From positions 124,001-188,000 of the IMG/VR virus record IMGVR_UViG_3300023174_000039: a DNA stretch of 64,000 nucleotides; one strand, 5' to 3'. This document shows positions 15,447-58,600 of this stretch, one piece after another. A model generated the notes under the pieces. The model ran no database searches and was not told the DNA's origin. It was given only the letters and a program-made list of their open reading frames with translations. The stretch's first letter is position 1; each line of letters opens with the position of its first letter. Made by a program: the position numbers and the translations under genes.

Positions 15447-15496
15447 TATTTAGCCCTGCAACGACTGTAGCCCGTGGGCTGTGTATTTGGTAAATA
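15447..15496. promoter_or_regulatory. divergent T4-like late promoters (TAAATA)
   Basis: TATTTA at 15447-15452 and TAAATA at 15491-15496. Confidence 0.65.
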
Positions 15497-15515
15497 CAGC
15501 ACAAGGACTCAGAAT

Positions 15516-18098: not shown

Positions 18099-18100
18099 AT

Positions 18101-22800: not shown

Positions 22801-24226
22801 CAACAGTTTGATCAACATGCGAAATCAAGTTATTGACACTGTGGGGCAAATATCAACAGGACTGCCACTCTGGATGACCAGTAAACAAGACAACGGGCGT
22901 GTGCTTGGGTTCACTCCAGCCTGGGTCATTGCTTATGTCAAGCCCGGTCGCGGCGCACAAGTTGCGTACTATCTAAATCGGCAATTTGGTGTGCAATTGA
23001 ACCGTGTGGACTTCAAAGTTGACCGTTACATACTGGATCGTAGCTTGAGCTTGAACTGGGACACTACCACACAAGACTGGACACCACAGCCAAGTTTGAC
23101 CACCTTTGATCGATTTGACACGTCGGGGTATAAATTTGTTGGTAACGTGACTTTTGCCACAAATTTAGCCTACTCAGATGTAAATGCAAGATCAGTGTCT
23201 TACATCAATGATCTGGGTGGACTTGATGGATACATAAACACTGGCCAACCGGTCAACACTGGCGATACCTTGATATTTGTCAAGCAGGAAAACTACAATG
23301 GGCCACCGGGCAGTAAGTACAGCACCACAGACCAGGCCTGGCAAGATTATGTGGTCACCTATGGTGAAGAAGGGTTTGATCAGGCAGGAACAGAATTTGA
23401 TCAAAGTTACACTGTGAGTGGTGGTGATGTTTTGATATGTACCAGTACCAATGCTGTGACCAATCGTATAACGTATAACAATGTCACTGGAATTCCCAAA
23501 GTGTATGCTGGATTGCCACTAAGATTGTTCACTCCCATTGGCGGACTAAGTGCGGGATTGCATGTGGTATTGACTGCTCCTAACAACAATACATTTACAG
23601 TGGGCAAGGCAACCACGGTAACACAAGTAGAAGTCAGTACAGATTTAATCACAGTGGCTGATGTCACTGGGTTTGCTGTCAATAGTCCAGTGCAATTTTA
23701 TCAGACCACATTTGGTGGCCTAGTTGCGGGTGTTACCTATTACATCTTGTCAATCACAGAAATTGCTGCTGGATATCAAATAACTGTATCGTTAACTCCT
23801 GGCGGAGTCAGAGAAGTTTTGGCCGGTGGAACAGGATCATGTTTGATGTACAGTAACACTGTGCCTGTCACAACTGACACAGGTACCATGGAAGCAGGAA
23901 TATTCAACGAACGAATGGCCATTTATAGAATCAATCGAGACCCGGTATCCAGTGTGATATCATTGACTTTGGTAGATCAAACTCAATCCAATGAATATGT
24001 GCAGGTCAGCCGAGGTGTGCAGTACAGAAACGCTCAATTGTATAGACCAGCCGCGCCTGCAGTTGATTTAACAAGAGTGAGTTGGTTACCGTTGGTCACT
24101 GTGGTAACCAACGAAACAACATTTGACCGAGATAGTATGCAGTTTATTGAACCAGTGGATATGTACAACGCTGGACAAATCAACGATAAATATCTTGTAT
24201 TCCCCAAGAGCAATATTTTGGTATAA
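19880..24226 (+). CDS. large virion structural protein with repeated Ig-like domains
   Basis: 1448 aa; repeated WITPAG.LG and GSLPPGI/GEFPPGI/LPQGL units. Confidence 0.75.
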   Translation: MAQPTWITPAGSLGIIPEGVFYQQTLLGSTDSLPNTPTVTAANGVTNRFTCTSLNGIYPRLNVTFAGTTFGGVDEYTRYFVLEVFPLTNEFSIAPTEFTTTPTPLTTATGSMTAVFTQHIYYYLISGSLPPGIQVSDNGTIVGVPQAIASFQGVPLEVSRDVVSKFTLRAYTEKYEAGQYVRDRIRDRTFELTVTGNDPPAWITPAGEIGTYYDGGEVNFQFAYTDTDPADIVAVSLVAGEFPPGISLGAKGLLYGYIEPIVPIDDNSGYDLSPSGTQPYDFVSSYVSRNYQFTLEITDGKSRDLRTFTMFVYARNEMTADTTQITADNTVVTADETTIRAPFLTNALPTNLGSVRSDNYYVHQFIGDDYDTASIAYAINVNQGSGLPPLQNSKTDTGTTNAGLDPKTGFLYGYIPDQGTTQIEYSFNITVYQTESVAVPVLCTATTAGTNRITCASTASLAIPSEWYAPGDPPLYVPIKLSGTGLGGLSTVGETLYYVLYVYSDTEFSVTASATSTTLVMLTTSAGTMTASVVITSQPYPFTLTIVGAIDSEITWLTPEHLGTLVNGETSLLYIEAVNRGGRTLQYRLASGEYNSLPQGLELLPTGEIAGRVTFNTFAVDLGATTFDNKTTNWDSSYTFNVNAYAPDTQQKLYDVASIGIVATGSGYSSASPPTIVFSTPVGASAETAMVGNVTIGYTDAITSVRRVGNVAYVTANNKLAPGDVANVNCSINSFDNSTATVLASSATQFIYANSGPDIASTIATGTVKYGTGITAVEVSNAGAGYTGQATITITEGYGGAGANLQAIMQQTGTRDVVSVFKKFTIKVNREYNAPYQSLYVQAMPPENDRALVASLLSNQNIFIPDYIYRPTDPNFGLSTQVVYQHAFGLAPDALDIYTESLYLNHYWKNLTLGEIKTAVARDANDNIVYEVVYSQIVDNLVNASGQSVAKIEATAYPIVDPADGSSVLNVVYPNSLINMRNQVIDTVGQISTGLPLWMTSKQDNGRVLGFTPAWVIAYVKPGRGAQVAYYLNRQFGVQLNRVDFKVDRYILDRSLSLNWDTTTQDWTPQPSLTTFDRFDTSGYKFVGNVTFATNLAYSDVNARSVSYINDLGGLDGYINTGQPVNTGDTLIFVKQENYNGPPGSKYSTTDQAWQDYVVTYGEEGFDQAGTEFDQSYTVSGGDVLICTSTNAVTNRITYNNVTGIPKVYAGLPLRLFTPIGGLSAGLHVVLTAPNNNTFTVGKATTVTQVEVSTDLITVADVTGFAVNSPVQFYQTTFGGLVAGVTYYILSITEIAAGYQITVSLTPGGVREVLAGGTGSCLMYSNTVPVTTDTGTMEAGIFNERMAIYRINRDPVSSVISLTLVDQTQSNEYVQVSRGVQYRNAQLYRPAAPAVDLTRVSWLPLVTVVTNETTFDRDSMQFIEPVDMYNAGQINDKYLVFPKSNILV

Positions 24227-29428: not shown

Positions 29429-29953
29429 ATGAAGCAAGTATTACATAAACATCACATTATACCAAGGCATGCCGGCGGGACTGATGATCCTACTAATCTT
29501 GTTAATTTAACCATTGAAGAACATGCTAACGCTCATCGCCTGTTATACAAACATTATAATAGACAAGAAGATTATCTGGCTTGGAAAGGATTAGCAGGCT
29601 TGATAGGTAAGGACGAGATGCTACATGCAAAATGCTCTCTTAATTCATCCCGTCCTGGTTCGTTGAACACTTTTTATGGTATGAAACATTCTGAAGAAAC
29701 AAAAAGAAAAATATCCGAAAAGCGTCAAGGGCACTCGGACAACAAAGGTATTCCAAAATCTGAAGAGCATAAAAAGAAAATAAGTGAGCGTCGAAAAAGT
29801 GAAGCAAAGAATTATACTTTTGAACACATAGACGGATCTGTGTTTGTTGGCTCTTGTAAAGAGTTAGCAAGTATAACAAAATCGCACCCAGCCGAACCGT
29901 GGAAATTAGTAGCAGGGCAATATAAAACACACAAAGGATGGAAAGTCAAATGA
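29429..29953 (+). CDS. HNH homing endonuclease with NUMOD3 repeats
   Basis: HKHHIIPRHAGGTDDPTNLVNLTIEEHANAH; HSEETKRKIS and KSEEHKKKIS; own TATAAATA at 29416-29423. Confidence 0.88.
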   Translation: MKQVLHKHHIIPRHAGGTDDPTNLVNLTIEEHANAHRLLYKHYNRQEDYLAWKGLAGLIGKDEMLHAKCSLNSSRPGSLNTFYGMKHSEETKRKISEKRQGHSDNKGIPKSEEHKKKISERRKSEAKNYTFEHIDGSVFVGSCKELASITKSHPAEPWKLVAGQYKTHKGWKVK

Positions 29954-32295: not shown

Positions 32296-33804
32296 ATGCC
32301 TATATTTGACCCACCAATCTCCCCAAATTCAAACTCTGTAGTACCACAGAGTGCTATAGATCGAGTGCCAGCGCCAGTAGACGTTGGCACACCTGCAGTG
32401 AACGTGATACCACGCAGTGCTGTGGATCGCAAACCGGCACCGGTAGACGTTGGGATACTACCAGTTCCTGTAGTACCAGTTAGTGCCGTGGATCGCAAAC
32501 CAGACCCGGTGGATCCCAGTGTTGCACTAGGTACACCCAGTGGCCCAGCTGCCCCGATATCAGTTGCCGCACCTATAAAAGAAACCCCGGTGATACCTGC
32601 TCCTGCGTTTACACCCACAACCGTTGCTCCTGCCACTGTGGTAAAATATCTGAGCATTTCTGATGAAGGTGTTGGAATCAATACCAATGTAACTGCAATG
32701 AATTTCACCGGAGACGGAGTTGTTGTTACCAATAACTCCAACGGAGCAAATGCAGTAAATGTCACCATCAACGGCGGCGGAGCCTCATACGGCAATTCAA
32801 ATGTGGTCACATTATTGGCTGGATTTGGATCTAATGTACTCAGCACCACAGGCAATGTCACTGGTGGTAATTTAATAACCAGCGCACAAGTTGTGGCCAG
32901 CGGTGTGATACAGTCTGGCACAGGACTCAGCACTGGTGGCTATCTAAGTGTGAATGGCACAGCCGACCTACACAATACCACAGTAACTGGTAATTTATCA
33001 GCCACTGGCAATGTCACTGGCAATTATGTTTTGGGCAACGGAAGTCAGTTAACAGGATTGCCTGCCACTTATTCAAATGCCAATGTGCAGTCCTACTTGC
33101 CCACGTATTCAGGCAACGTTGGTGCACTAACAGTGACAGGCAATTTGACTGTCACTGGAACAACTACAACTGTGAATACAGAGATTGTAAATGTCAGTGA
33201 AAGTGTTGTGGGCAATGTGGATGCCGGTAATTTACGCACAGTTGGTCAAGTAACTGCTACTGGCAACATCACAGCAGGCAACATCAGTACTGTTGGTAAA
33301 GTTATTGCTGGTAATTTAGATGCTATCAATCTAGTGGTCAACAATATCTCCAGTGACGATTCAACCCTTGTGTCAGTGCAAGATGGACTACAGGTATATG
33401 GCGACATTATTGCTGACAATATAATTGTAGCTAATTCAATGAGTTTTTCCAATGGCAGTACATTATCGTCGGCAGCTTGGGAATTAGTAGATAGCATTTC
33501 TGCTAACTTTGTTGGTTGCGCTACTCCCACGGTAACCGGAACTTATTCAATGCAGTATTACATTGACAATTACAACGAACTATGGATTTCTTTTCAGTCT
33601 GGACAAAACTACCCAGGATGGATTGGCTCAACACATATTCCTACAGTTGCATTATTTGCTAATTCTGTTTATACAAGTACTTGTACCACTAGCGGAAGTC
33701 CTAATGTGCCATCAATTCAATGGTTTGATATTAGCAATACACGAGTTCGTATTAGTATGGCAACTACTCAGTATACTGGCAATATCAACATTTATGCAAG
33801 ATAA
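32296..33804 (+). CDS. fibre-like structural protein with Pro/Val-rich N-terminal repeats
   Basis: Three SA(I/V)DR.P.PVD repeats; GNVTGGN repeats. Confidence 0.7.
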   Translation: MPIFDPPISPNSNSVVPQSAIDRVPAPVDVGTPAVNVIPRSAVDRKPAPVDVGILPVPVVPVSAVDRKPDPVDPSVALGTPSGPAAPISVAAPIKETPVIPAPAFTPTTVAPATVVKYLSISDEGVGINTNVTAMNFTGDGVVVTNNSNGANAVNVTINGGGASYGNSNVVTLLAGFGSNVLSTTGNVTGGNLITSAQVVASGVIQSGTGLSTGGYLSVNGTADLHNTTVTGNLSATGNVTGNYVLGNGSQLTGLPATYSNANVQSYLPTYSGNVGALTVTGNLTVTGTTTTVNTEIVNVSESVVGNVDAGNLRTVGQVTATGNITAGNISTVGKVIAGNLDAINLVVNNISSDDSTLVSVQDGLQVYGDIIADNIIVANSMSFSNGSTLSSAAWELVDSISANFVGCATPTVTGTYSMQYYIDNYNELWISFQSGQNYPGWIGSTHIPTVALFANSVYTSTCTTSGSPNVPSIQWFDISNTRVRISMATTQYTGNINIYAR

Positions 33805-33834
33805 ATGCTCTTGGTGAACGGGGCTAAATATAGC

Positions 33835-34434
33835 ATGGATAAAGAACTCTTTAAAGATCATTCAGACTACTGGCAAGTGGCCGACAACATACGCGATATC
33901 TACATGAGCGATGGTAGTATCACCACGCTGTTGGACTTTGAACGTGTGCTAGACGAAGTAGATATCTACGCATTTCGAAATTGGGAAATTGGCGAACTAG
34001 TGGCCGGACCCGAAATCACCAAATATCGTGTGGGCTGTACATTTATGTGGCCGGAAAATCTCATGCCTGATCCCCGTGGCGGCAAAAGATTGCTGCCATT
34101 TGATTGTGAAGTCAGCTACCGCAGAGTGGAAATGAAAATCCCGATCAAGATTACAGATCCTTCAGATTATATCCCCGGCACACACAAGGCCAAGATTGTT
34201 AAAAAGCCTGTGTGGTTGGTGGAAATTGTGATGCCAAAAAGCCTAATGAGTGACATCAAAACAGGCTCAATTGAAATGGAAGATCAGGATATTGATCTGG
34301 AAGAATTGGATGACGCATACGAAAAAGATCTTGACAAGCAAGAGAATCAAAGTGATGCCAAAGCCGAAGACGCACAACAAGACTTGGCTGCTGTGCCCGG
34401 ACAGCCACAAGCACCAGCCCCAGGAGTAGTATAA
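33835..34434 (+). CDS. conserved hypothetical late protein
   Basis: LLDFERVLDE...MPDPRGG; TAAATA at 33825. Confidence 0.75.
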   Translation: MDKELFKDHSDYWQVADNIRDIYMSDGSITTLLDFERVLDEVDIYAFRNWEIGELVAGPEITKYRVGCTFMWPENLMPDPRGGKRLLPFDCEVSYRRVEMKIPIKITDPSDYIPGTHKAKIVKKPVWLVEIVMPKSLMSDIKTGSIEMEDQDIDLEELDDAYEKDLDKQENQSDAKAEDAQQDLAAVPGQPQAPAPGVV

Positions 34435-34973
34435 TGTTTAGACACTTGTTAGAAGGCCTACAGTACAAAGACCTAGAAGGCATCATGAAATCAACTGTGC
34501 ATATTGATGAATTTGCATCAAAAATGGGCGACGATGACGACATTGTGGTAGTGAGCTTTTTTGTAAGAGACCTACAGGCCGCAAAAGATCTAGTGGGTTG
34601 GTTTGAAAAGGGCTATGATTTTGTGCTGGATGCTGATCGCTCACCCGGTGAAATCAAGCCCAGTCGCTATCTAGTGTATGTGGAACTGCGTCGCCGTCCC
34701 GCAGTGGCCAAACAAGTGGGCACATTGATTGATGACCTGGGCACGCTCACAGAATTTGATGCCAAAGACTGGACCATGCGTTACGATGGCCGGACACAGC
34801 CTTGGTCAGTGGATGCAATGAAGGCAACTGTGCCACTTACTCCTGCTGACTATCGGTCAGCACATGGTGATGATCTAAATGATGTACGCACAGCCGCTGG
34901 TATTGAACCCAAGAAAGTTCACAAGCCCACACCAGAGACCTTGGCCATGCAGTCGGCTGCTGGGATAAGATAA
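34434..34973 (+). CDS. hypothetical late protein (putative head-associated)
   Basis: MFRHLLEG start; C-terminal AAGI motifs. Confidence 0.7.
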   Translation: MFRHLLEGLQYKDLEGIMKSTVHIDEFASKMGDDDDIVVVSFFVRDLQAAKDLVGWFEKGYDFVLDADRSPGEIKPSRYLVYVELRRRPAVAKQVGTLIDDLGTLTEFDAKDWTMRYDGRTQPWSVDAMKATVPLTPADYRSAHGDDLNDVRTAAGIEPKKVHKPTPETLAMQSAAGIR

Positions 34974-36166
34974 TGAAGATCACAGACGTTATTAAAGAAG
35001 ATGTTGCTCTTGAAGGTGAAGTTGTTCCACTGGGTAAAAAACATCGTGGTGATCTAGACAGCGTAAATTCATGCTCCAAGTGCGGTGGCAAGTTAGAAGG
35101 CGGAACATACATGGGGCAAAGAATCAAAGTATGCCAACCATGTAAGCAAGTTTATCTACCACCTAACAGCGGTATTGATCAACAGGGTAATAAAATTAAA
35201 GAACAAGGTGTGGCGGAAGGCTCATTGCGTGAACAGGCCAGTAAATTATTGTCTGCTGAAGATAAAGATGGCGTGATCACTATCATAGTACAAGCACCCG
35301 ATGGTACCAAGAGATCAGTAGCCGATACCAATCCAAACTATATCAATAGATGGTTAATGAAATATGGACTACGACTTCCTGCCAGTATTACCAGCAAGTT
35401 TGTGGGTGTGACAGAAGAATTCAGACCCACCACAGGGCAAGCCATGGGCATACGCAGTCAGACTGCACAAAAGATGAATCCTGGCAGCAGTAAATTCATT
35501 TGGAAACGACCAAATCAAATCATGGGCAGTCACACTGAAAATGAACTTCGTGCATTGAAATTTAGGTACTCAGCCAAACACAACGTCTGGGGCGGCACAC
35601 AACAGATGTGGAGTCAACTGGAGGGCACACTAAAAGAATTTGCTCCCAGTGCTCCTGGTGGTGCTGATCGCGGAGGTGGCAACTACTTTAAATCTTTGGC
35701 CCAGGCCTGGTATTATAATGGCGTACACGACTTTGATCTACAAGGTGGTGTCAAGACTCAACAAGACGTGGAACGCTTGCTACAACGTGGTATTGTATGT
35801 CCTGATGGTGTCACACGCAAGTTTGGAATAGATTACAATTCAGGTTTTAACGGTGTCGTGATATCCAGCGATGATTACTATGAACATTCTGATCATGGCA
35901 AACGACCTGGTACAATGATAGATGTTCGCACCGGGCGGCCCTGGGGACCATATGATTATATGGAATTCTCTGAAGATGATTTGGACGAAGATGTAGAAGA
36001 AGGCATCCGTGTGCCAGCACAGCAGATCTTGGGCACAAAAAACCGTGCGCAGTCAGCTTACTATCCCACCAATGTCAAGCCCAAGGTGCCTAAACTAGAC
36101 ACTCCCCTGACAGACAAGGAACTGGCAAGACTCTCACAGTTGGCCGGTGTCAACACAAATAAATAA
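34973..36166 (+). CDS. modular putative internal-head polyprotein (Zn ribbon plus several modules)
   Basis: MKITDVIKE start; CSKC...CQPC; linkers QGVAEG, GVTEE and LKEFAP. Confidence 0.65.
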   Translation: MKITDVIKEDVALEGEVVPLGKKHRGDLDSVNSCSKCGGKLEGGTYMGQRIKVCQPCKQVYLPPNSGIDQQGNKIKEQGVAEGSLREQASKLLSAEDKDGVITIIVQAPDGTKRSVADTNPNYINRWLMKYGLRLPASITSKFVGVTEEFRPTTGQAMGIRSQTAQKMNPGSSKFIWKRPNQIMGSHTENELRALKFRYSAKHNVWGGTQQMWSQLEGTLKEFAPSAPGGADRGGGNYFKSLAQAWYYNGVHDFDLQGGVKTQQDVERLLQRGIVCPDGVTRKFGIDYNSGFNGVVISSDDYYEHSDHGKRPGTMIDVRTGRPWGPYDYMEFSEDDLDEDVEEGIRVPAQQILGTKNRAQSAYYPTNVKPKVPKLDTPLTDKELARLSQLAGVNTNK

Positions 36167-36172
36167 CATATC

Positions 36173-37465
36173 ATGAAAATAAACGACGTTGTTACATTAA
36201 TGGAATTTGGTGCTCCCGGCAGTCGCGCACTGGGCACTGGAAACTTTGCTCTGCTACACCGAGCCTATGTGAACAAACGTCCTAGACTCAGTAGATACTT
36301 GCAGTTGGATTTTGGCAACAATCAAATTATCGAACTTGACGATGATGACATTGAAGCAGTGGCCAACTACTATGATACATTGCCCACAGATCAAGATCGA
36401 TACACCTTTGTGTACGATGTCATGAGTCGTGGGGACAAATTTGATGCATTGTTGAAAAAACTGGGTCGCAGATCTGGTGCTCCTGAGCAACCCAGCTTGC
36501 TGGAGCAAAGCGACGACCCTGATCTAAGTCGCAGTGGTGTGCGTAGTGCGGCATTGAGCACAGCTTTGCGCCAGGCCTACGCCAAGTATCCACAAGCACA
36601 GAGTGATATCGAAGCCTTGATCATGCACGACATGGATGTTCAAAAAGACACCAAACAAGAGCTACAGGCACAAGATAAAATAAATCAACGTCAGGACGAT
36701 ATTGATGTGCAACTGCGCAATGTTGCCGGTAAACAAAGCAAAAAGATTTCCAGCTTAGATCAAGAAAATGATGACTTGACAGCAGAACTAGATCGGCTCA
36801 GCAGAGAACTGGATGCCATGCATGCTCAAACAGGTTCTGAACCTGAGCGCAAGAAACGCAGTGACAGCAAGGGCCAGCCTCCAGTGTACAACGTCAATAT
36901 CAAGTCAGCTGATCGTGCTGAAAAATCACAACAACGAGCAGCCGATGCTGAAAAACGCAAACCAGAACCAGCAAAACTCCGTCCAGGTGCCAGCACATTC
37001 AAACCTGTGGGATCTACTTTGCCCGTGACTCCTGCGGTCAAGCCACCTGCACCCACTATCAACGTGATTGATCGTCCAGATCCCAGTGCTGCCATGAGTC
37101 AAGTGGCATTTCAGGCTCCTGCCCCGCAACCAGACATTGCATTGCCTACCAAGCTGGGAGCAGATCTTGATGAGCCTGAAACGGACGCAACTCAACCAGA
37201 TCTGTTTGCAGAACCCAAAGATAACATAACGGTAGATCAGCCCGTGCCGCAAAGCATGTCCTCAATAGATGCTGAACCTGAACCTGAATTGCCGCCCAAC
37301 GTTACTAACCTGGCCACTCGCCGCAACAGAGTTGCAGAACCAGGCAGTGATCAGTATCGTAGAGACACTGTGGACCGAGCAAGAGATCTCATGCAAAAAC
37401 AAATGGCCATGCACGAAGCACAAGACTTGCGCCGCATGCAAAAACTAGCAGGATTACTGCAATGA
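36173..37465 (+). CDS. putative internal-head/core protein, coiled-coil plus Pro-rich
   Basis: MKINDVVTLME start; ends LRRMQKLAGL. Confidence 0.65.
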   Translation: MKINDVVTLMEFGAPGSRALGTGNFALLHRAYVNKRPRLSRYLQLDFGNNQIIELDDDDIEAVANYYDTLPTDQDRYTFVYDVMSRGDKFDALLKKLGRRSGAPEQPSLLEQSDDPDLSRSGVRSAALSTALRQAYAKYPQAQSDIEALIMHDMDVQKDTKQELQAQDKINQRQDDIDVQLRNVAGKQSKKISSLDQENDDLTAELDRLSRELDAMHAQTGSEPERKKRSDSKGQPPVYNVNIKSADRAEKSQQRAADAEKRKPEPAKLRPGASTFKPVGSTLPVTPAVKPPAPTINVIDRPDPSAAMSQVAFQAPAPQPDIALPTKLGADLDEPETDATQPDLFAEPKDNITVDQPVPQSMSSIDAEPEPELPPNVTNLATRRNRVAEPGSDQYRRDTVDRARDLMQKQMAMHEAQDLRRMQKLAGLLQ

Positions 37466-38670
37466 AAATAAATCAGATTATACACGAAGCAGGTACTGGA
37501 TTAGAAATTGATCGTAGCATTCCTGGCCGCACTATTGCCAGGATCAGTGGAGATCTAGCACACAGAACAGGGTCTCTGACAGATAAAAGATTACCTGATC
37601 ACCATCCTGATGATGATTATGTTCCTTGGTCTGGCAAGGTAGGTGCATCAACCCGTGATGACGAAGAAGACACGTTTGATATAGATTACACCGGCGACGA
37701 TGGTGAATTAAACGAATTTGTTACGCCACAAGCAGTGGCACAAGATCCTGGACTAGAACGTGAAAAGGATGTGGATGTTATTTTCTTTGGCTTTATGCCC
37801 CAAGACTTCACTGCCCGAACTGCATGGAAGGCACTAGAAGATGTGTTGCCTAGAGAATATCCTGCTGGTAGTGAACGAGCACAAAATAAAATAGCAGAAG
37901 TTAGCAAGAATAATGGTGCCGTAGTCACAACCAAGCCCCTGAGCATAGCACAGAAACTGGTTAAAGAATTCCAAGCACGTGGCATCAAGTGTAGAATTGA
38001 TGATTCAGGTCTGGAAGAAGACATAACCCGCAGAGGATTCTTGAAGGGTGCAGGAGCAGCCGCTATGGCAGCAGCCGGCGGATCAGCACTAGGCCAGTCC
38101 ATACAAATGCCCACAGTAGACCAAGTTGACAGACAAAAAATGACAATTGTGGTAGATGGTCAAGAGTATCCCTTAGTCATATTATCTCCTACAGACTTTA
38201 GACCACGTGGCGGACAACAATTGCATATAACCTGTGCGCAGATGGGCGAACGCTGTATGGGTAGATATGATGCTGTGTTAGCACAAAACCGAGTGTTTGT
38301 GTTGCCAGGAACAAAGCCACCGGTTATTCCAGCCGGAGTTGACGAAAGTCGCCGAGGCAGCATGCCTGAGCCTGAAAACTTTGACAGTGACTGGGACTAT
38401 GAAGACGCTATGACACGTTGGAGAAACAGCGACTCTGACCAAGACATTGACTACGAGAATATAATAGACGATGAACCTGATGACTGGTTTGACGAATCTC
38501 GAGAGAAAGTAGGCAATATGGATGCTGATGCATTTGATGCTGCCTTGTCACGTATGAAAAAGCTAGCCGGTGCAGGTCCGCTAAAGACCGTGTATGATCC
38601 CAACAAACGTGTGTACCGAAATGTACCGCATGCTGTGCAACCCGCACAACAACCCAAGAAGGCAAGATAA
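37462..38670 (+). CDS. modular putative internal-head polyprotein with an internal Tat signal
   Basis: MKINQIIHE start; internal LEE-DITRRGFLKGAGAAAMAAAG. Confidence 0.65.
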   Translation: MKINQIIHEAGTGLEIDRSIPGRTIARISGDLAHRTGSLTDKRLPDHHPDDDYVPWSGKVGASTRDDEEDTFDIDYTGDDGELNEFVTPQAVAQDPGLEREKDVDVIFFGFMPQDFTARTAWKALEDVLPREYPAGSERAQNKIAEVSKNNGAVVTTKPLSIAQKLVKEFQARGIKCRIDDSGLEEDITRRGFLKGAGAAAMAAAGGSALGQSIQMPTVDQVDRQKMTIVVDGQEYPLVILSPTDFRPRGGQQLHITCAQMGERCMGRYDAVLAQNRVFVLPGTKPPVIPAGVDESRRGSMPEPENFDSDWDYEDAMTRWRNSDSDQDIDYENIIDDEPDDWFDESREKVGNMDADAFDAALSRMKKLAGAGPLKTVYDPNKRVYRNVPHAVQPAQQPKKAR

Positions 38671-40073
38671 TGAAGATAAAAGATTTTCAAACAGAATCAT
38701 GGAGCGAAAAATACAAGAACAGTATCAACTGCTCGCACCCCAAAGGTTTTAGCCAACGTGCGCATTGTGCCGGCAAAAAGAAGCATAATGAATCTGTTGA
38801 AATGGAAATGGTGTGTGAAGACTGTGGCATGTGCAAGTCACATGGTAGTCTCAATGAAATTCGAAAGGGTCAAAAAGACTCAAATGGCTACACACGTTGC
38901 TGGCCTGGCAAGCATGCCGAAGGTACCAAAAAGGGCAAGAATGGCGGCCAAGTTCGCAACTGTGTGCCCAATGAAAGTGTAGCGGAAGCAGATATGAGTC
39001 GCAGAGGTTTCCTTGGTGCGTTGGCAGGTGCAGGTTTAGCTGCCGCAGGATTAGGTGCCAGTGGTAATGCTCAGGCAGGCACCAACGATGCGGCATTTTT
39101 TAACAAAGTAAACGATCTACATCAAAAAACAGCTCAAACAAATCCTCGTTATGCCAAAGAACATGCATCCTTGAACATAGGTATTGTTAGAGGCATGTCT
39201 GGTGCCTCTGCTGAAAACAACAAGCAATGGGCACAAAAAACTGCTCAACTGTTACAAAAATACGGAGTTGCTGTAAACGAAAGTGTAGTAGAAGGTGAAC
39301 AGCGTGTGGATTCACTTGTGACCGACGCACTGAAAATCATGCAGGGTTCAGAAGTAACTGATGCTGTGCAAGCACTAAAGACTGTGCTGGGAGATAGAGA
39401 GTATAACGGTCGCCGTGGTCATTATAATTTCTATATTAGACAAATAATGGATATGTATAACCAGCAAGGCCTAGCAGAAGACTTCAACGGTGAATACGAT
39501 GACGAAGCAGGCATGGTCAAGAATAACCTTCACACTATTATTCGCGTGTTGACACACCTGGGCAAAGATATCGACAACAACGAAAATTTCCCTGAATGGG
39601 TGCAAGAAAAGATTGCCATGATCAAGCAAACCAGTGTTGAAGTTATGAACTACATGATTAGTCAGCACAAAATGGACGTTGATCCTGAAGTAGAAGAAAT
39701 GTACGAAGCCATGGATCAACTGGCAGAAGAAATGGCAGCCAAAAAAGGCATCAGTGCTGACCTAGTATGGGAAAGCTTCGAAGCTCTAGACGATCACATG
39801 CTGTACGAAACAGCCGCCTGGCGCAGAAAAGAAGGCAAGAGCAAAAAGGGCGGCCTAAACGCCAAAGGTGTTGCTAGCTATAGACGCGAGCATCCTGGTT
39901 CAAAACTGCAAACAGCAGTGACCACAAAGCCTAGTAAATTAAAGCCTGGATCAAAAGCAGCCAAGCGTCGCAAGAGTTTCTGCGCACGTATGTCAGGTGT
40001 TAAAGGACCTGCCAAAAAGCCCAACGGTGAACCCACACGCAAGACTCTGGCCTTGCGCAAATGGAACTGCTGA
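38670..40073 (+). CDS. modular putative internal-head polyprotein with an internal Tat signal and basic Cys modules
   Basis: MKIKDFQTE start; VAE-ADMSRRGFLGALAGAGLAAAG...AQA; C-terminal RRKSFCARM...LRKWNC module. Confidence 0.65.
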   Translation: MKIKDFQTESWSEKYKNSINCSHPKGFSQRAHCAGKKKHNESVEMEMVCEDCGMCKSHGSLNEIRKGQKDSNGYTRCWPGKHAEGTKKGKNGGQVRNCVPNESVAEADMSRRGFLGALAGAGLAAAGLGASGNAQAGTNDAAFFNKVNDLHQKTAQTNPRYAKEHASLNIGIVRGMSGASAENNKQWAQKTAQLLQKYGVAVNESVVEGEQRVDSLVTDALKIMQGSEVTDAVQALKTVLGDREYNGRRGHYNFYIRQIMDMYNQQGLAEDFNGEYDDEAGMVKNNLHTIIRVLTHLGKDIDNNENFPEWVQEKIAMIKQTSVEVMNYMISQHKMDVDPEVEEMYEAMDQLAEEMAAKKGISADLVWESFEALDDHMLYETAAWRRKEGKSKKGGLNAKGVASYRREHPGSKLQTAVTTKPSKLKPGSKAAKRRKSFCARMSGVKGPAKKPNGEPTRKTLALRKWNC

Positions 40074-40723
40074 TGCTGGTTGATGAACTGTTTACCACGT
40101 CGTGGCTGACAGAATCCACGGACTCTGCACCTGATCTTGACCGGATCTTGGTAGACCTGTGTGCCATGGTTGTAAAGGGTAAGCAACGCAAGCCCGACTA
40201 CTACGGCATGGTTGCGGCTGCTGTGGTTGATCCCAAAGGCCGTGTGGTCCGGGCTGTGAATCACTTTGATGACGCAACTGACAAACGCATACATGGTGAA
40301 CGTGCTGCCATTCAAGCGTATGAACGCCGGTACGGTCGAGTCACACCAGATTGTACTATAGTAACCACCCTGAGTCCTTGCAGTGAGCGCATGGACGATC
40401 GTTATGGTGAGAGCTGTGAAGATCTTTTAGATGACTATGGTATCACTGATATCTACTGTGGCTATCAAGACCCCACACAAGACTCGGGCTACACAGTTAC
40501 TAGCAATGAAAAAATACAGGAACTGTGCAAGGCCTTTGCTGACACGTTCCTGGGTGATCAACAACTGGATGAACTCAGCTTCTTGGGTAGCCCTTGCACC
40601 AAAGACTGTTCTGGGCATCGCGCAGGATATGATTGGTCAGCACGTAAAGGCAACATCCCGGGCACGAGCCCTTACAGTCCCAGCTTCAACAACGGCGCCA
40701 ATTTAAGAGCCGCTGGCAAATAA
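40073..40723 (+). CDS. Zn-dependent nucleotide deaminase-like protein plus a small C-terminal module
   Basis: HGERAAI...TTLSPC...C deaminase motif; start MLVDELF coupled by TGATG. Confidence 0.75.
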   Translation: MLVDELFTTSWLTESTDSAPDLDRILVDLCAMVVKGKQRKPDYYGMVAAAVVDPKGRVVRAVNHFDDATDKRIHGERAAIQAYERRYGRVTPDCTIVTTLSPCSERMDDRYGESCEDLLDDYGITDIYCGYQDPTQDSGYTVTSNEKIQELCKAFADTFLGDQQLDELSFLGSPCTKDCSGHRAGYDWSARKGNIPGTSPYSPSFNNGANLRAAGK

Positions 40724-41452: not shown

Positions 41453-41576
41453 TAAAAAATTTCCGTGTTAGGTAAATAAAAGTACAATACCACTAAAAAT
41501 TTTGTGGCTCTTGTGTTTTTCTAATACATATTTAACTTATGTATCACATACGTCAAAAATTTTCAAAAGGATCAAA

Positions 41577-42554
41577 ATGAAACGATTATTAGCTATATTG
41601 GCACTGGTTCCTATGCTGGTGTTTGCTCAGTCTTGGACCCCGCCCAAGACAGTCACTGCCATAGTGGGAAATGCACCCGGGGCAGGCAACGAAATTGCAT
41701 TTAGAAAAGCCGCAGAGATTGTGACACGCACAACAGGCATTAACTTTGTGATAGAAAACCGCCCGGGTGCAGACAGTGTTATTGCCATGAACATGATGAT
41801 GACCAAGCCCAGTGACGGAAGTGTTGTGGCACTGCCCAGTCACATGAGCACCTATGTCACAAATGATATCTGGGAAAAGAATGTCAAGAAATTTGAATGG
41901 AATAGTTTTGAAGAAGTCTTAAGCTATGGCAAAGCACCATTGGTGGTTGTGAGTGCTGCCCGTAGTTCAATTAACACGCCAGCAGATTTGCTAAAGATGT
42001 TTCAAACAGTTGACAGGCCCATTAATGTGGCCATCGGCGGTGGTGCACATAGAATGGCGTTTGAGTACATGATGGTTAAAACTCGAGCAGATCGCAATCA
42101 AATCAAACATATCAAATTTAATGGACCAGCACAAGCGGTGAGCAGTGTGGCTGCATATGATGGCAAAATTGGCACAGAACTTGGTATTATGCCTGCTGCC
42201 ATTGCTCTGCCCCTGGTGCAAGCAGGCAAGGTCAAATTCATTGGACTAACAGGCACAAAGAAACTACAACAAATACCCACAGTACCTTTGCTAAGTGATG
42301 CTATACCTGGTGTTATGGCACAGGCAGGGTGGAATCTTGTGTTGCCACCCATGACACCGCGTCCCATTGTTGATTGGTATGTGAAAGAATTTGGCCGTGC
42401 ATTAAAGACACAAGAATATCGCCAATGGGCCGAAGACAACTTAATTATAGTAGACGAAAAGGATCACACTCCCGAAGGAGTGCGAGCACACATGGCAGAC
42501 TTGCGCCAGCGATTCTTGCCCATGGCACAGTATATTTCACAAGAAGGCAATTGA
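41577..42554 (+). CDS. Bug/TctC tripartite tricarboxylate transporter substrate-binding protein
   Basis: Signal peptide; PGAGNEI, VIENRPGA, GKVKFIG and LVLPPMTP motifs. Confidence 0.85.
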   Translation: MKRLLAILALVPMLVFAQSWTPPKTVTAIVGNAPGAGNEIAFRKAAEIVTRTTGINFVIENRPGADSVIAMNMMMTKPSDGSVVALPSHMSTYVTNDIWEKNVKKFEWNSFEEVLSYGKAPLVVVSAARSSINTPADLLKMFQTVDRPINVAIGGGAHRMAFEYMMVKTRADRNQIKHIKFNGPAQAVSSVAAYDGKIGTELGIMPAAIALPLVQAGKVKFIGLTGTKKLQQIPTVPLLSDAIPGVMAQAGWNLVLPPMTPRPIVDWYVKEFGRALKTQEYRQWAEDNLIIVDEKDHTPEGVRAHMADLRQRFLPMAQYISQEGN

Positions 42555-48938: not shown

Positions 48939-49011
48939 ATATTTTCGTAATGGTTGCTTGTTGTTGATCAACACAGTATAATAACAATATAATTGGTAAA
49001 AAAGGAACTTG

Positions 49012-51273
49012 ATGCAGAACAATCCTGAAGTAGAACAAGTGGTTGAAACCGCTGTTAATTTGGCTAGAGAAAAACAGCACGAATACGTGCTGACCGAACA
49101 CCTGTTGCTGGGCATGTTACGACACATGCCATTTAGGCGAGTGGTTGAAAAGTTTGGTGCCGATGCTGACCTACTGGATATTGAATTAAATGTATACCTA
49201 GACAGTCAGGTCAACCTAGTTAGCAACGCCAAAGATGTCCAACCTCGCAAAACACAGGCGTTGGAACGTATCTTTAATCGTGCCAATGTGCAGGTGATGT
49301 TTACCGGTCGCAGAACCATGAATGTGATTGACATTTATCTGAGCATCATGGCCGAAACCAATAGTCATGCACATTACTTTTTGCTCAAGTACGGTATTCG
49401 CAAAGCAGAATTCATCGAGTTCTATCAAAAGAATCACCAGCCCGAGAGTGTGAAAATGAATGCCCAGCAGGCCACAGACATTCTGGAAGAGCATTGCACA
49501 AACATTTCAGCAATGGCAGCCAAGAATCAGTTAGAACCCTTGATTGGTCGCAGTCAAGAACTGGAGGACATGATCACTGTGTTGGCACGGCGCTTCAAGG
49601 CCAATGTGCTCATGGTAGGTGATCCTGGGGTGGGCAAAACTGCCATCATCGACGGACTTGCACAAGAGATACACAACAACTGTGTGCCCGAGTTCCTTAA
49701 AGGACACGAAGTATGGGGTCTTGAGATTGGGTCATTACTGGCAGGAAGCAAGTATCGCGGAGAGTTTGAAGAAAAGTTCAAGCAGGTTATTGCCGCACTA
49801 GAAGCCAAGAAGAACTGTATATTGTTTGTGGATGAAGCACACACCATGCGTGGCGCAGGATCATCGGGACAGAGCAACTTGGACTTTGCCAACATGCTGA
49901 AACCAGCAATTACCAAGGGCAACCTCAAAGTCATTGCATCAACCACTTGGGAAGAATACTACGAGAGTTTTGAAAAGGATCGTGCCTTGATGCGCAGATT
50001 CCACAGACTGTCAATTGATGAACCCAATGATGCAACCACAGAACAAATCCTCATTGGGCTGAGTCCACGACTAGAAAAGTTCCACAATGTCATGATTGAT
50101 ACAGAAGCCATGACAGCGGCTGTGGAACTGAGCGGACGTTACATTCATGACAAAAAGAATCCCGACAAATCAATTGACTTGTTGGATGGTGCTTGTGCTC
50201 GACAGCGTGTGCGGGATGCAGGACTGGTAACAGTTACCAAAGACATGATCATGGCGCAGGTCAGCAAGGTAGCAGGTGTGCCCATGGATCGCTTGCAGAA
50301 CGAGCGTAGCACAAACATTGTGGATCTTGAAAGCAATATCAAGCAGAAGCTCTACGGCCAAGATGCCGCTGTGGATTCAGTGCTAGAGCGTGTGTACATT
50401 AACTTTGCAGGCATTGGTGCAACAACTCGCCCTATGGCAAGTTTCCTGTTCTTGGGTCCAACAGGTACAGGCAAAACAGAACTGGCCAAACTGCTGAGTG
50501 AAAACTTGGACATGAAACTGCTCAAGTACGACATGAGTGAGTATCAAGAAAAGCACACAGTATCCAGCTTGATCGGTGCGCCGCCAGGTTATGTGGGCTT
50601 TGAGGATGGCAATGTAGGTGGCGGCAAGCTGATCAGTGATCTTACTAAAAACCCATTCTCGATTATCTTGTTTGATGAAATTGAAAAAGCACACCCTGAT
50701 GTTTCCAATATCCTGTTGCAGATGCTGGACGAAGGACACATCACAAGCTCTGCAGGCAAGCGTGTGGATGTCAAAAACACCATCATTATCCTGACTTCAA
50801 ATTTGGGTGCGCGAGACAACGAAAGCAATGCCATTGGTTTTGGATCACAGGAAAAGACCGGCAACGAAGACCGGGCAATGAAAGAGTTCTTCAAGCCTGA
50901 ACTGCGTAATCGTATTGATCAGATCTGTAGATTTAACAAGCTGGACCGGCTGGCCATCAAGAAGATTGTGATCAAGTTTGCAGATCAACTCAAAGCCAGT
51001 TTAGATGAAAAACACATTCGACTCACACTCAGTGAAGATGTCATAGACATGCTGGCCGACAAAGGCTACGATCCCAAGATGGGTGCTAGACCCTTGGCAC
51101 GCAAGATTGATGAATTGATCAAAGTACCTTTATCTAAGAAAATTCTATTTGATCGACTCGGCAACTGCGAAGTGTTTGTGACCATGCAAGGTGATTCAGT
51201 ACATTTTGAATCTGTTGCACACCTTGTGCCCGTGGTAGACAACGATGGCATTATCCGATTCCCAGATGTTTGA
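49012..51273 (+). CDS. clpA: ATP-dependent Clp protease ATP-binding subunit ClpA
   Basis: Clp N-domain; two AAA modules (GDPGVGKT, GPTGTGKT); LIGAPPGYVG; MGARPL. Confidence 0.92.
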   Translation: MQNNPEVEQVVETAVNLAREKQHEYVLTEHLLLGMLRHMPFRRVVEKFGADADLLDIELNVYLDSQVNLVSNAKDVQPRKTQALERIFNRANVQVMFTGRRTMNVIDIYLSIMAETNSHAHYFLLKYGIRKAEFIEFYQKNHQPESVKMNAQQATDILEEHCTNISAMAAKNQLEPLIGRSQELEDMITVLARRFKANVLMVGDPGVGKTAIIDGLAQEIHNNCVPEFLKGHEVWGLEIGSLLAGSKYRGEFEEKFKQVIAALEAKKNCILFVDEAHTMRGAGSSGQSNLDFANMLKPAITKGNLKVIASTTWEEYYESFEKDRALMRRFHRLSIDEPNDATTEQILIGLSPRLEKFHNVMIDTEAMTAAVELSGRYIHDKKNPDKSIDLLDGACARQRVRDAGLVTVTKDMIMAQVSKVAGVPMDRLQNERSTNIVDLESNIKQKLYGQDAAVDSVLERVYINFAGIGATTRPMASFLFLGPTGTGKTELAKLLSENLDMKLLKYDMSEYQEKHTVSSLIGAPPGYVGFEDGNVGGGKLISDLTKNPFSIILFDEIEKAHPDVSNILLQMLDEGHITSSAGKRVDVKNTIIILTSNLGARDNESNAIGFGSQEKTGNEDRAMKEFFKPELRNRIDQICRFNKLDRLAIKKIVIKFADQLKASLDEKHIRLTLSEDVIDMLADKGYDPKMGARPLARKIDELIKVPLSKKILFDRLGNCEVFVTMQGDSVHFESVAHLVPVVDNDGIIRFPDV

Positions 51274-55694: not shown

Positions 55695-58600
55695 ATGAAC
55701 ATCAACGAACTAGATTCCTATAACCTTGCCGATGCTGTTAAGTTTAATGAAGAACTTAACCCACGCATCTGGCAAGGTTCTCGCATGCGCCCAGAAGTGC
55801 GCCGAAAATTACTGGCCATTGCTCGAGATTTTAAACAAAGTCTAGGACTCAGTGACCTAGAAGTCAAAGACATCACACTCAGCGGAAGCAACGCTGGTTA
55901 CACATATACCCCGCACTCGGATATTGACCTACACCTTGTGGTAGATGTTCCACAAGCAGAAACTGACGAAGTGTATCGTGAGTTGTTCAATGCCAAAAAG
56001 TACCAATATAATGATGAGCACAACTTGGCCATTGGCGGCTATCCTGTTGAGTTGTATGTTCAGCCGGCCAATCAAACACATCACTCACAAGGAATCTATT
56101 CAGTATTAAACAACGACTGGACTGCTATTCCTCGCAAGCGAGAAAGCACAGTGAATGACGGTGCTGTAAAAAGCAAGTACGAACTCATGAAGCATCGTAT
56201 TAACTCTGCCATCAACAGCGGCAACATCAAACAGTTGACCAAAACTGCCGCACGTATCAAACAAATGCGGCAAGCAGGTCTAGACAAAAACGGTGAACTG
56301 GGTCCTGAGAATCTGGCCTACAAAATGTTGCGTACACAAGGGCTGATTGAAAAGTTGTACACTGCTCGCACCGCGGCCAAAGATCGGCTGCTGAGTCTAC
56401 AAGAGCAACCTGTGGCAGAACACGTAACGTACGGTTTTGCAGAAGATGCAACCATATCTCCTTACGGTGTTAGTCCCACGACACAGATGTTTCTAAATGA
56501 AACAGGTGACAGTGAACAAACTGTACATGATTTTATTTCTCATACCGCTGAACAACTGGGCATTGAAAACATGCCGCATATTGAATTGCACACAGACCCT
56601 GAATGGTCAGAACGTGAACACAGCTTTGGTCGTTACACTCCTGAAACACATACCTTGGAAGTGAACTTGGCCAATCGTCACATCATGGACATCCTGCGTA
56701 CCACAGCACACGAACTGGTACATTGCAGACAACATGAACTATCTCCACTGCCCAACGAAGCAGGAGAAACTGGCAGTCGTTGGGAAAACGAAGCACATGC
56801 CAAAGCTGGGGTGATCATGCGTGACTATGCTGATGCCAATCCTGAAAAGTTTGGCGAACATGCCCTGGCAGAAGCATCAGGATATATTCCCACTAGGGCG
56901 CAGGTTCGAGATCCACGTTTCAGTACTGCACTTACTGTGGATGTGCATCCAGGGCAAACAGGCAAGGAAGCCAACAAGATGGCTTTGCAAACAGATGCAC
57001 AAGGTCGTCCTGCCTTGTTGACGAAGGGGCTGGCAAATCAACTGCACGAAGAGTTTGCACAGTTTGATGAGTCAACTGCGCTATTTGAAATCAAAATGAC
57101 CGGCAAGAACCTGCGAGCCGAAGCTGCCAAAACAGGTGCCATTGCCGGCATGGAATTTGAAATGATTGTGCCCAACATGGAGGGCGACCCTGACGATGAT
57201 CAGGAAATGGAGCCTGATTGGGAATATGATGAAAGTGTTATTAGTATTGATGATGCATGTAACTTCTTTGAAAACGGTGAGGGCAACACCAGTGGTGACA
57301 TTAGACGCCTGCGTGAACGCATGCAAAACTATTATTACGATTGGTTAGATGAGCAGTTTGACAGTCGCTGGGACGGCGATGAGTTAGAGTTTATTTACAA
57401 CTACATTAAAGAAAATGCCAGCGCAGAAGAAATTGCAGAAATATTGGGCACAGAACCCAACGAAGATGGTGAGTATCCTGACCCAGGTAAACAAGATTAT
57501 CTTGATGCCGCAAACAAAATTAGCGAACAAGGCTACGACAACCAATGGTATAGTCAAGCACGTGAAGACGCACAAGAAGATTATAACAGAAATGCTGACC
57601 AAGAACGAGAATGGCTAGCAGACCAAGACATCAACACCATGAAGGATGTGATGGACACGTTTGGCAATGTCAATTGGCCTTACTACTATAATTCCAATGT
57701 CGGTGGTGATAGAAGTATAGATGATGTGGCTAATGATTTCCAAGACGCAATAGGCCGTGATGTTCAAGCTAGCACTAGATATCACTCAGGGAGTGTGGAT
57801 AGACCCAGCCCAAGTTCACATCATTATGTGGTCGAGCCCGACGGCAGTTTAGATGGCGACAACTACGGGGACCGAGGCCTGGAGTTTGTGAGCCCACCAT
57901 TGCCCATTGATGTAATCCTTAATGATCTAAGCAAAGTCAAACGCTGGGCAGACAGCTATGGTTGCTACACTAACGATTCAACTGGATTGCACATCAATAT
58001 TTCAGTGCCTGAATACAACAGAGACAAGCTGGACTTTGTAAAGTTGGCTATCCTGATGGGCGACGAACATGTGTCCGACAGCTTTGGACGATTAGGTGCA
58101 TACTACGCAAAAAGTGCTATGGCTGCAATTCGCGACAATGTTCGCAGTCGCCCTGAGGCCGTGACAGATGCCCTGGAAAAAATGCGAACACACATGAATA
58201 CAGCGGCATCAAAAGCTATTCATGCCGGTGTGACTCAGAAATTTACCAGTATCAACGTCAAAGACGGCCACATTGAATTTCGCTCACCTGGCGGTGATTG
58301 GTTGGGCGAGAACTTTGACAAGATTGAAAACACCCTGTTGCGTTTCACAGTGGCCATGAGTGCTGCCTTAAACCCAGAAATGTATCGCGAAGAATACCTG
58401 AAGAAACTGTACAAGTTATTGACTCCGGAAGGACAGAAAGACGAGTACGGAGACATGATCGAAGAGTTCTCCAAGTACATGGTATCACTGCAAGGCAGTG
58501 GTGCAGAAGCGAGTGGCAAGTTGAGCAAAGAAACACAGCAGGCCATCAAGGACTTTAGAACAGCGGCCAGCAAAGAACTAAAACAAAAAAATCTGGCCAA

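Follow-up and report, generated by a model that had tools for sequence, protein, structure and literature searches.

Signal peptides for the twin-arginine translocation (Tat) pathway are textbook N-terminal tags. Polyproteins with internal signal peptides are made by enveloped RNA viruses such as flaviviruses, where host signal peptidase helps processing. In phage T4 the prohead protease cuts the capsid-targeting sequence and the N-termini of gp21 and gp22 after hydrophobic-x-Glu. The T4 internal proteins IPI, IPII, IPIII and Alt carry the capsid-targeting sequence, are cut by gp21 and enter the host together with the DNA to act as first-strike effectors (PMC9026906, PMC3012670). In the giant myoviruses phiKZ and SPN3US the prohead protease likewise cleaves many head proteins after x-E, frequently at more than one site (PMC5694885, PMC10052503). 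The polyvalent proteins described by Iyer, Burroughs, Anand, de Souza and Aravind in 2017 comprise several effector modules, for which packaging, injection and processing into active pieces are predicted (PMC5512222). In the classification of Tat signals, internal ones are known only as uncleaved anchors (PMC13673990). Here we describe the open reading frame (ORF) 38670-40073 of a lake phage, which encodes a putative Tat-type signal peptide and its cargo as an internal, linker-flanked cassette. The ORF lies in a stretch of 64,000 nucleotides (the window, to which all positions refer), which is part (approx. 124-188 kb) of the 331,654-bp uncultured viral contig IMGVR_UViG_3300023174_000039 from a lake metagenome.

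We propose that the product of this ORF is a processed polyprotein, in which the linkers would be cut and the freed cassette would become a Tat substrate exported to the host periplasm, and we give this account a slightly better than even chance. The gene and its sister cassette have the following features.

38670-40073, + strand: modular 'beads-on-a-string' precursor gene of 467 aa, the fourth of four consecutive leader-bearing genes
38670-38696, + strand: leader of 9 residues, MKIKDFQTE, of a family whose consensus resembles the T4 capsid-targeting sequence
38787-38801, + strand: first NESVE linker, residues 40-44
38970-38987, + strand: upstream linker NESVAE (V-A-E being a hydrophobic-x-Glu), left copy of a direct repeat
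38988-39077, + strand: predicted Tat-type signal peptide, residues 107-136, from the TIGR01409 match of the excised module and the conservation of RRGFL and A-x-A
39078-39275, + strand: cargo 2, a 66-residue three-helix domain predicted by AlphaFold2 (AF2), with conserved NPRYAKEH and LQKYGV motifs
39276-39293, + strand: downstream linker NESVVE, right copy of the direct repeat
39294-39479, + strand: following helical module GEQRVDSL... (predicted local distance difference test, pLDDT, 82-94), ending in the linker QGLAE (39465-39479)
39834-40064, + strand: C-terminal basic DUF6321 domain, by its match to PF19846
38020-38094, + strand: Tat signal 1 of the sister cassette (GLEE / DITRRGFL...) in the neighbouring gene 37462-38670, TIGR01409 27.5 bits

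A preliminary description of this stretch, made from its letters, had proposed a cryptic internal Tat signal in the ORF, and NESVAE, ADMSRRGFL...NAQA, the cargo and NESVVE were all found where it had placed them. The predicted signal has an n-region ADMS, twin arginines (RR) at 39000-39005, an Ala/Gly h-region and a c-region AQA, with the signal-peptidase cut predicted after position 39077. S-R-R-G-F-L occupies residues 110-115 and fits the Tat consensus (S/T)-R-R-x-F-L-(K); it is followed by a 17-residue uncharged core of Ala, Gly and Leu and then by A-Q-A. In position the signal departs from an ordinary Tat signal, as its RR stands at residue 111 of 467 and not at the N-terminus. In an alignment of 21 modules the residues R, R, G, F and L were at least 90% conserved, the Ala at -1 was invariant and the Ala at -3 was at least 90% conserved. 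Conservation of RRGFL and A-x-A at 90-100% is what is expected for a working, cleavable signal peptide. A Tat-like pattern, defined as RRxF[LIVM] followed by an uncharged core, occurred twice in the 66 long ORFs of the window compared with a mean of 0.0055 in 2000 shuffles, none of which reached two. When excised, the module scored 19.0 bits with TIGR01409 (cutoff 16.7), and the excised sister signal 1 was above the cutoffs of both TIGR01409 (27.5 bits) and the Pfam family TAT_signal (PF10518; 24.1 bits). From these signal features we infer Tat-dependent export of cargo 2.

The passenger, earlier estimated as a helical stretch of about 65 aa, comprises 66 residues. AF2 run on the 21-sequence module alignment placed helices of cargo 2 at model residues 35-51, 53-61 and 72-91 with a pLDDT of approx. 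80-92, while the signal was modelled with low confidence. No match to the cargo 2 fold was detected in the PDB or in the AFDB clusters (all E > 2), and neighbours in the ESM Atlas were non-specific only. Cargo 2 was also confirmed to be unrelated to cargo 1, as the BLASTP match between the two cassettes covered only D(I/M)(T/S)RRGF.

The cassette can be present or absent as a whole. In the homologue P0002 (365 aa, 95% identical) exactly the 102 residues between both NESV linkers were missing, and the GEQRVDSL module came straight after NESITE with no cassette between. A contig from another freshwater metagenome (run X3) skipped 38978-39305, with 22 other letters in between, resulting in a P0002-type junction, and in run X4 a different module followed position 38977. 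The cassette is flanked by an imperfect direct repeat of 19 nt (16/19), whose copies lie at 38970-38988 and 39276-39294, 306 nt apart, and the recombination breakpoint was placed after NES (38977). Judged from these comparisons the cassette is a discrete, movable unit of 102 codons. The earlier reading of a linker-Tat-cargo-linker cassette in a polyprotein, present twice with different cargo, was supported by each sequence comparison capable of breaking it: by the discrete indel, the conserved RRGFL and A-x-A, the internal position of the module, the promiscuous junction motifs and the envelope-type domains among other cargoes. Contigs from four lakes repeatedly broke or diverged at 38831-38833 and 38977, and depth was increased over 38674-38946; many coexisting phage strains seem to have the N-terminal Cys-rich modules in common yet differ downstream.

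When 1.84 billion representative proteins were searched exhaustively and without a profile, the signal together with cargo 2 was found in 24 protein clusters, at positions 28 to 765 of phage proteins of 172-957 aa. In the homologues the module ends with KYGVKVNE-GVAE-G. Neither an ordinary N-terminal pre-protein form nor a cellular homologue of the module was found among these representatives. One candidate for an N-terminal stand-alone module, P0243, was rejected as an artefact: its 1-kb contig (k141_645766 of the European Nucleotide Archive) opens with an Illumina adapter (L086:1-27), and the GTG start chosen by the gene caller produced the false N-terminus.

Internal export signals were found to be a trait of the family. 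Approximately 45 of 120 homologues of the neighbouring gene contain an internal signal of the form (E/D)-D-(I/L/M/V)-(S/T)-RRGFL-(K/Q)-G-x-GAAA... After removal of similar cargoes 32 non-redundant internal Tat cassettes remained, with approx. 25 unrelated cargoes, and across these cargoes the core was followed by a c-region of signal-peptidase type. TAT_signal was matched at E <= 0.01 in 23 of the 25 distinct cassettes tested. Ten distinct Tat-like signals were present in 78 related loci (1.15 Mb), all of the internal-cassette kind: nine lie deep within ORFs, and one is fused to the leader. In all 32 cassettes a [LIVMF]-x-E ended 2-4 residues before the RR, for which the chance is approx. 7% in each, the cassettes being related by ancestry.

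The cargoes that Pfam recognises are predicted envelope domains. The cargo of P0164 is a TonB C-terminal domain (TonB_C, E 2.6e-13) and that of P0136 an M48 metallopeptidase with HELGH; in P0195 there is a lipobox LAGC with the Cys exactly at the cleavage position. Additionally, a second cassette type was detected, in which hydrophobic-x-E is followed by GW(K/R)EK and (L/V)AAAALAG(S/T)MALG(A/S)AGA without RR, resembling a signal of the general secretory (Sec) pathway. It is carried by P0152, P0164 (residue 451), P0188 (residue 465), P0228, P0256, P0259 and P0262, and its existence ruled out that the family uses Tat-type signals only. Both cargo-2 homologues that lack RR bear this Sec-like signal in place of the Tat signal, therefore cargo 2 is always preceded by some export signal. 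Two chains contain two signal cassettes each, namely P0245 (RR at 39 and 270) and P0164 (RR at 207, GWKEK at 446), and the topology of two export signals in one polypeptide makes sense only if the chain is cut. Real export is argued for by the TonB_C, M48 peptidase and lipobox cargoes, by the swap to a Sec-like signal and by the outer membrane of the host, the latter deduced from an Rz-like spanin encoded by the phage.

The ORF product would be a precursor of small modules joined by protease-type linkers (NESV-x-E, QG(V/M/L)AE). For the full-length protein of 467 aa AF2 returned confident helical modules with low-confidence stretches between them; pTM, the predicted template modelling score, was 0.26, and pLDDT was low at residues 102-141, 199-210 and 269-277, which correspond to the linkers and the signal. 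Homologues of the ORF and of its neighbour are mosaics of common small modules that vary in order and number, with (Q)G(V/M)AE(G/A) and NESV as recurrent junction motifs. The junction 4-mers GVAE, VAEG, QGVA and GMAE were the most context-diverse in the family (GVAE with 77 upstream and 68 downstream contexts), and NESV also ranked high.

In the proposed mechanism an endoprotease would cut the linkers on both sides of the cassette, leaving ADMSRRGFL... as a free N-terminus and parting cargo 2 from the downstream modules. The host Tat translocase would then carry the folded cargo 2 across the inner membrane, and signal peptidase I would cut after AQA, as the conserved A-x-A suggests. Cleavage downstream appears to be needed because the approx. 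260 residues after the cargo are modules that directly follow the first linker in Tat-less homologues; presumably these modules cannot be destined for the periplasm in one case if a 95% identical sibling retains them in the cytoplasm or capsid. The need for the upstream cut is less certain. It is favoured because a hydrophobic-x-Glu stands invariantly just before the RR and is equivalent to Glu-9 of the leader. Glu-9 was equated with the linker Glu on the basis of two relatives (one among the 78 loci, and P0227) in which a 9-residue leader is fused directly to D-(I/L)-T-RRGFL.

The likeliest protease would be the phage head-maturation protease, working within the prohead. A start of the type MK-I-x-(D/Q)-hydrophobic was found in only four ORFs of the window, all adjacent (34973-40073). 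The 73 distinct leaders compared have the consensus M-K-I-N-D-I-I-x-E; in 56 of them the ninth residue is Glu, and in 175 of approx. 217 proteins a hydrophobic-x-E ends at leader position 9 or 10. The T4 capsid-targeting sequence is MKTYQEFIAE (10.1101/2021.01.19.427310; PMC9026906), and the N-terminal sequences of T4 gp21 and gp22 end in LIE-9 and IAE-9, respectively. For giant phages the motif of the head protease is A/S/G-x-E (PMC5694885, PMC10052503). The prohead as the site of the cut is the weakest step of the proposal, a plausible one that several points of context favour: the leader is T4-like, the gene shares a co-directional block with homologues of virion proteins of Pseudomonas phage PA5oct, the PA5oct clade has been reported to encode a prohead core protease (PMC7318152), and a DUF6321 gene of a pelagiphage stands between scaffold and capsid genes. 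Least certain is that the capsid-borne cassette would reach the next host with the DNA, as the T4 internal proteins do; this step carries approximately half of the weight given to the account as a whole. Release and export by way of capsid packaging and injection is, taken as a whole, a tentative idea that we consider more doubtful than probable.

The search for the protease gave several negative results. Queries with T4 gp20, gp21 and gp23 matched nothing, whether in the window, the 78 related loci or the PA5oct regions retrieved. The PA5oct gene annotated as 'head maturation protease' is ClpP-like and without homologue in the window, and the guess that PA5oct gp283 and gp281 are the protease and the capsid protein was unsupported. 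The window itself encodes a subtilase of 590 aa (18080-19852; Peptidase_S8, E 2e-26) between the large ORFs 15474-18098 and 19880-24226, but nothing ties it to Glu-specific cuts or to the linkers, and it is no more than a possible processing enzyme. Apart from DUF6321 no Pfam domain was found in ORF 38670-40073, and no peptidase domain.

Several other observations weigh against the processed-polyprotein account. A head protease was not found in the 64-kb window, and none of the internal head proteins verified by experiment was significantly homologous to an ORF of the window. The four leader-bearing genes had no significant homology to the PA5oct virion proteins gp279 and gp281 either, the likeness being at the level of motifs. 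With the full-length protein TIGR01409 gave 15.8 bits, just under the cutoff, and the TAT_signal score of 16.2 bits was under the gathering score of 22.7. Hydrophobic-x-Glu is a loose motif, and the conserved junctions could be recombination joints and not cleavage sites, which the breakpoints at 38977 would fit too. A Tat signal placed inside the chain, after a folded domain, can function uncleaved, e.g. in FecR (PMC13673990), and the ATG at 38994 in cassette 2 has an ordinary ribosome-binding site. The phage is uncultured, and cleavage, presence in the virion and export are all predictions from sequence.

There are three rival explanations. The signal could work as in FecR (class V), so that the N-terminal 106 residues would stay cytoplasmic and the internal signal would be recognised with no cut upstream; either all C-terminal parts, or the cargo alone after a downstream cut, would cross the membrane, and signal peptidase would then release them. 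A Tat review of 2026 knows internal signals behind a folded cytoplasmic domain (PMC13673990), and no genuine family member has the signal at its N-terminus, but class V signals are uncleaved anchors, whereas here A-x-A is conserved and the weakly hydrophobic Ala/Gly core contains no long hydrophobic run. The 260 residues behind the cargo are made up of modules that stay in the cytoplasm or capsid in Tat-less homologues, the two signals per chain of P0245 and P0164 give no single-chain topology, and the invariant hydrophobic-x-Glu before the RR is left without explanation. We consider a FecR-like mode of action unlikely. More unlikely still is a nested gene, in which ribosomes would start at the ATG at 38994 and produce a pre-protein with an ordinary N-terminal Tat signal. 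MSRRGFL is a typical start of a Tat pre-protein, and the GGAAG preceding the ATG, described earlier as weak, turned out to be ordinary: the anti-Shine-Dalgarno energy was -3.5 kcal/mol, near the median of -4.05 kcal/mol over 50 gene starts and in the top 21% of internal ATGs. An ATG stands at the equivalent position in 4 of 10 related cassettes. However, 5 of the 10 cassettes with DNA have ATA, ATT, ATC or TTA there and no start codon within 8 codons, including the sister cassette at 38020, which reads CTG GAA GAA GAC ATA ACC CGC AGA; most cargo-2 homologues contain D-L-T-RR, and the GGAAG is explained by the codons of the conserved x-E-A. Thus internal initiation may apply to this copy, as the preliminary description had allowed, but fails as a general mechanism. 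It would also not reduce the finding to a simple nested gene, as had been assumed, since the frame runs to the stop at 40073: the product would drag 260 residues of non-export modules along unless cut, and the downstream linker would still need cleavage.

The explanation to which we give the smallest chance is that RRGFL and the Ala/Gly stretch are not an export signal at all, but a spacer, a motif for capsid assembly or interaction, or a recombination scar, with a convergent likeness to Tat signals. The internal position, where Tat signals usually fail, the TAT_signal score of cassette 2 below threshold and the lack of a recognisable periplasmic fold in cargo 2 would agree with this. It is difficult to reconcile with the TAT_signal matches in 23 of 25 distinct cassettes, with a c-region that follows the core across approx. 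25 unrelated cargoes and an A-x-A kept in the cargo-2 family, with the TonB_C, M48 peptidase and lipobox cargoes, and with the exchange of the signal for a Sec-like one on the same cargo.

The T4 internal proteins are one of the described systems that come close to the processed-polyprotein account. They and the present proteins each have a short leader (MK..., two hydrophobic residues, x, Glu at 9-10) on unrelated, fast-evolving proteins, both would be cleaved after hydrophobic-x-Glu (here deduced from the motif), and in both cases the genes, which are hyperplastic, are located among those of the head. In contrast, the T4 internal proteins have a single domain and are cut once, whereas here up to approx. 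10 modules with repeated linkers are present, and among the T4 internal proteins none has an export signal and none is known to exit the cytoplasm. The T4 proteins are known as packaged proteins, the present ones from their genes alone. In SPN3US the leaders of gp53 and gp54 end with ...ARESVE, close to NESVE here (PMC5694885, PMC10052503). However, the cuts in phiKZ and SPN3US remove propeptides from large proteins, while here they would free many small modules, and the present phage is PA5oct/Rak2-like and not phiKZ-like.

The architecture of polyvalent proteins is analogous in that several effector modules are contained in one polypeptide, but these are large known enzymatic domains, 2 to 15 in number and often with their own zincin-like peptidase, whereas here mostly orphan mini-domains are joined by uniform linkers. 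The survey of polyvalent proteins mentions neither signal peptides nor the periplasm (PMC5512222), and membership of ORF 38670-40073 in that class is not supported by its sequence. FecR resembles the present protein in having a twin-arginine signal inside the chain behind an N-terminal part (PMC13673990), but there the signal anchors a cellular regulator in the membrane and stays uncleaved, unlike the mobile cassette with its retained A-x-A and protease-type linkers. The signals of flaviviruses are co-translational, Sec61-dependent and eukaryotic, those described here Tat-type, post-translational and from a double-stranded DNA (dsDNA) phage of a Gram-negative bacterium. Each component, i.e. 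the T4 leader, Glu-specific proteases, polyvalent proteins, Tat and internal viral signals, is known singly. We found no description of their combination, in which a phage polyprotein with a leader harbours an exchangeable cassette that is bounded by linkers and provides a cleavable Tat or Sec-like signal within the chain; literature searches turned up no article on DUF6321 or on internal Tat signals in polyproteins of phages.

The DUF6321 domain (PF19846) covers residues 389-465 with 72.6 bits compared to a cutoff of 28.5 (E 4.2e-20). In Pelagibacter phage HTVC031P a stand-alone DUF6321 gene of 81 aa (gp30, L085:4980-5225) lies between the scaffolding and major capsid genes, a hint that the basic DUF6321 module is possibly head-associated. 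Gene 176 of the cyanomyovirus Synechococcus phage S-SCSM2R (L082:1057-3504) encodes an extremely Lys/Arg/Glu-rich protein of 815 aa, whose C-terminal end consists of the GWS.KYK.SI.C..PKGFSQKAHCAGK module and DUF6321, as here; therefore these modules occur in marine T4-like phages too. The upstream paralogous genes 34973-36166, 36173-37465 and 37462-38670 have the MKI.D leader in common, and a (R)M.KLAG-type motif stands at their ends. P0018, a member of the 38670 family, contains in its interior the C-terminal module of 34973-36166, therefore modules move between paralogues.

The four leader-bearing genes are part of a block that was recorded as follows.

32296-40723, + strand: co-directional, tightly packed gene block in which starts and stops abut or overlap

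The block encodes a fibre-like protein, two proteins homologous to PA5oct virion proteins, the products of the four leader-bearing genes and a dCMP deaminase. ORF 33805-34434 has 38% identity to a PA5oct protein annotated as a virion protein detected by mass spectrometry. Promoters and terminators were not in excess within the block, and scans for the T4-type late promoter TATAAATA, for sigma-70 promoters and for terminators were uninformative. The window has a GC content of approx. 45% and no tRNA genes. Its genes include a clamp loader, PhoH, ClpA, an endolysin and the Rz-like spanin, and the gene order around PhoH, the two virion proteins and ClpA is the same as in PA5oct. Gene content places the phage with the PA5oct / Rak2 / GAP32 / Atu_ph07 giant myoviruses. 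No similarity between isolated phages and the window DNA was detected at megablast level; pelagiphages and cyanophages match the DUF6321 end only.

In PA5oct the proteins PQE65_gp281 (L084:29321-30817) and gp279 (L084:32473-33921), both annotated as virion proteins detected by mass spectrometry, adjoin the large terminase. They start with MFNINDILRLAGV... and MKLFEVFTLYE..., respectively, and gp281 contains an internal SKLAGI...NVEESV; the leader, KLAG and NESV features of the window genes are echoed there at the level of motifs. The region 169-181 kb of PA5oct (L081) encodes ClpX, ClpS, the ClpP-like 'head maturation protease', FtsH, DnaJ and Hsp20, a large proteostasis set, and the present phage encodes a full-length ClpA homologue (49009-51273). 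Close to the gene block, 41502-42554 encodes a TctC-family periplasmic solute-binding protein (PF03401, E 6.6e-18) with an ordinary Sec-type signal MKRLLAILALVPMLVFAQS; its true start is probably an internal ATG near 41577. Further genes of the window are 55695-60572, coding for a protein of 1625 aa with nucleotidyltransferase and amidoligase_2 domains, and 29429-29953, which is HNH / homing-endonuclease-like and is flanked by the clamp-loader gene and a conserved phrog_420 gene.

Should proteolysis free the cassettes, they would represent a sixth way to make a Tat substrate, i.e. a new, proteolytically unmasked substrate class, and would be evidence for true polyproteins of dsDNA phages that deliver many mini-effectors. 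The uniform linker and the leader could become tools to package and release foreign proteins. In its furthest form, which we put forward as a speculative possibility with the odds against it, strings of mini-effectors would be packed into the capsid by means of the T4-like leader and cut by the head protease, and some of the freed pieces would expose Tat or Sec-like signals and, once injected into the cytoplasm of the next cell, be re-exported by its own translocases. Re-export into the periplasm would then take place before any phage gene is expressed, and the effectors would act on the envelope, where a TonB C-terminal decoy or an M48 protease could block superinfection or envelope defences. 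Such a route by capsid, injection and re-export would be categorically new, a new route of phage effector delivery, and if the cut occurs in the prohead these would be the first injected phage proteins aimed at the periplasm via the host export machinery. The cleavable internal Tat cassette with its approx. 25 cargoes recurs across lake phages of a widespread group, and these cargoes provide a list of small orphan domains whose predicted site of action is the Gram-negative envelope.

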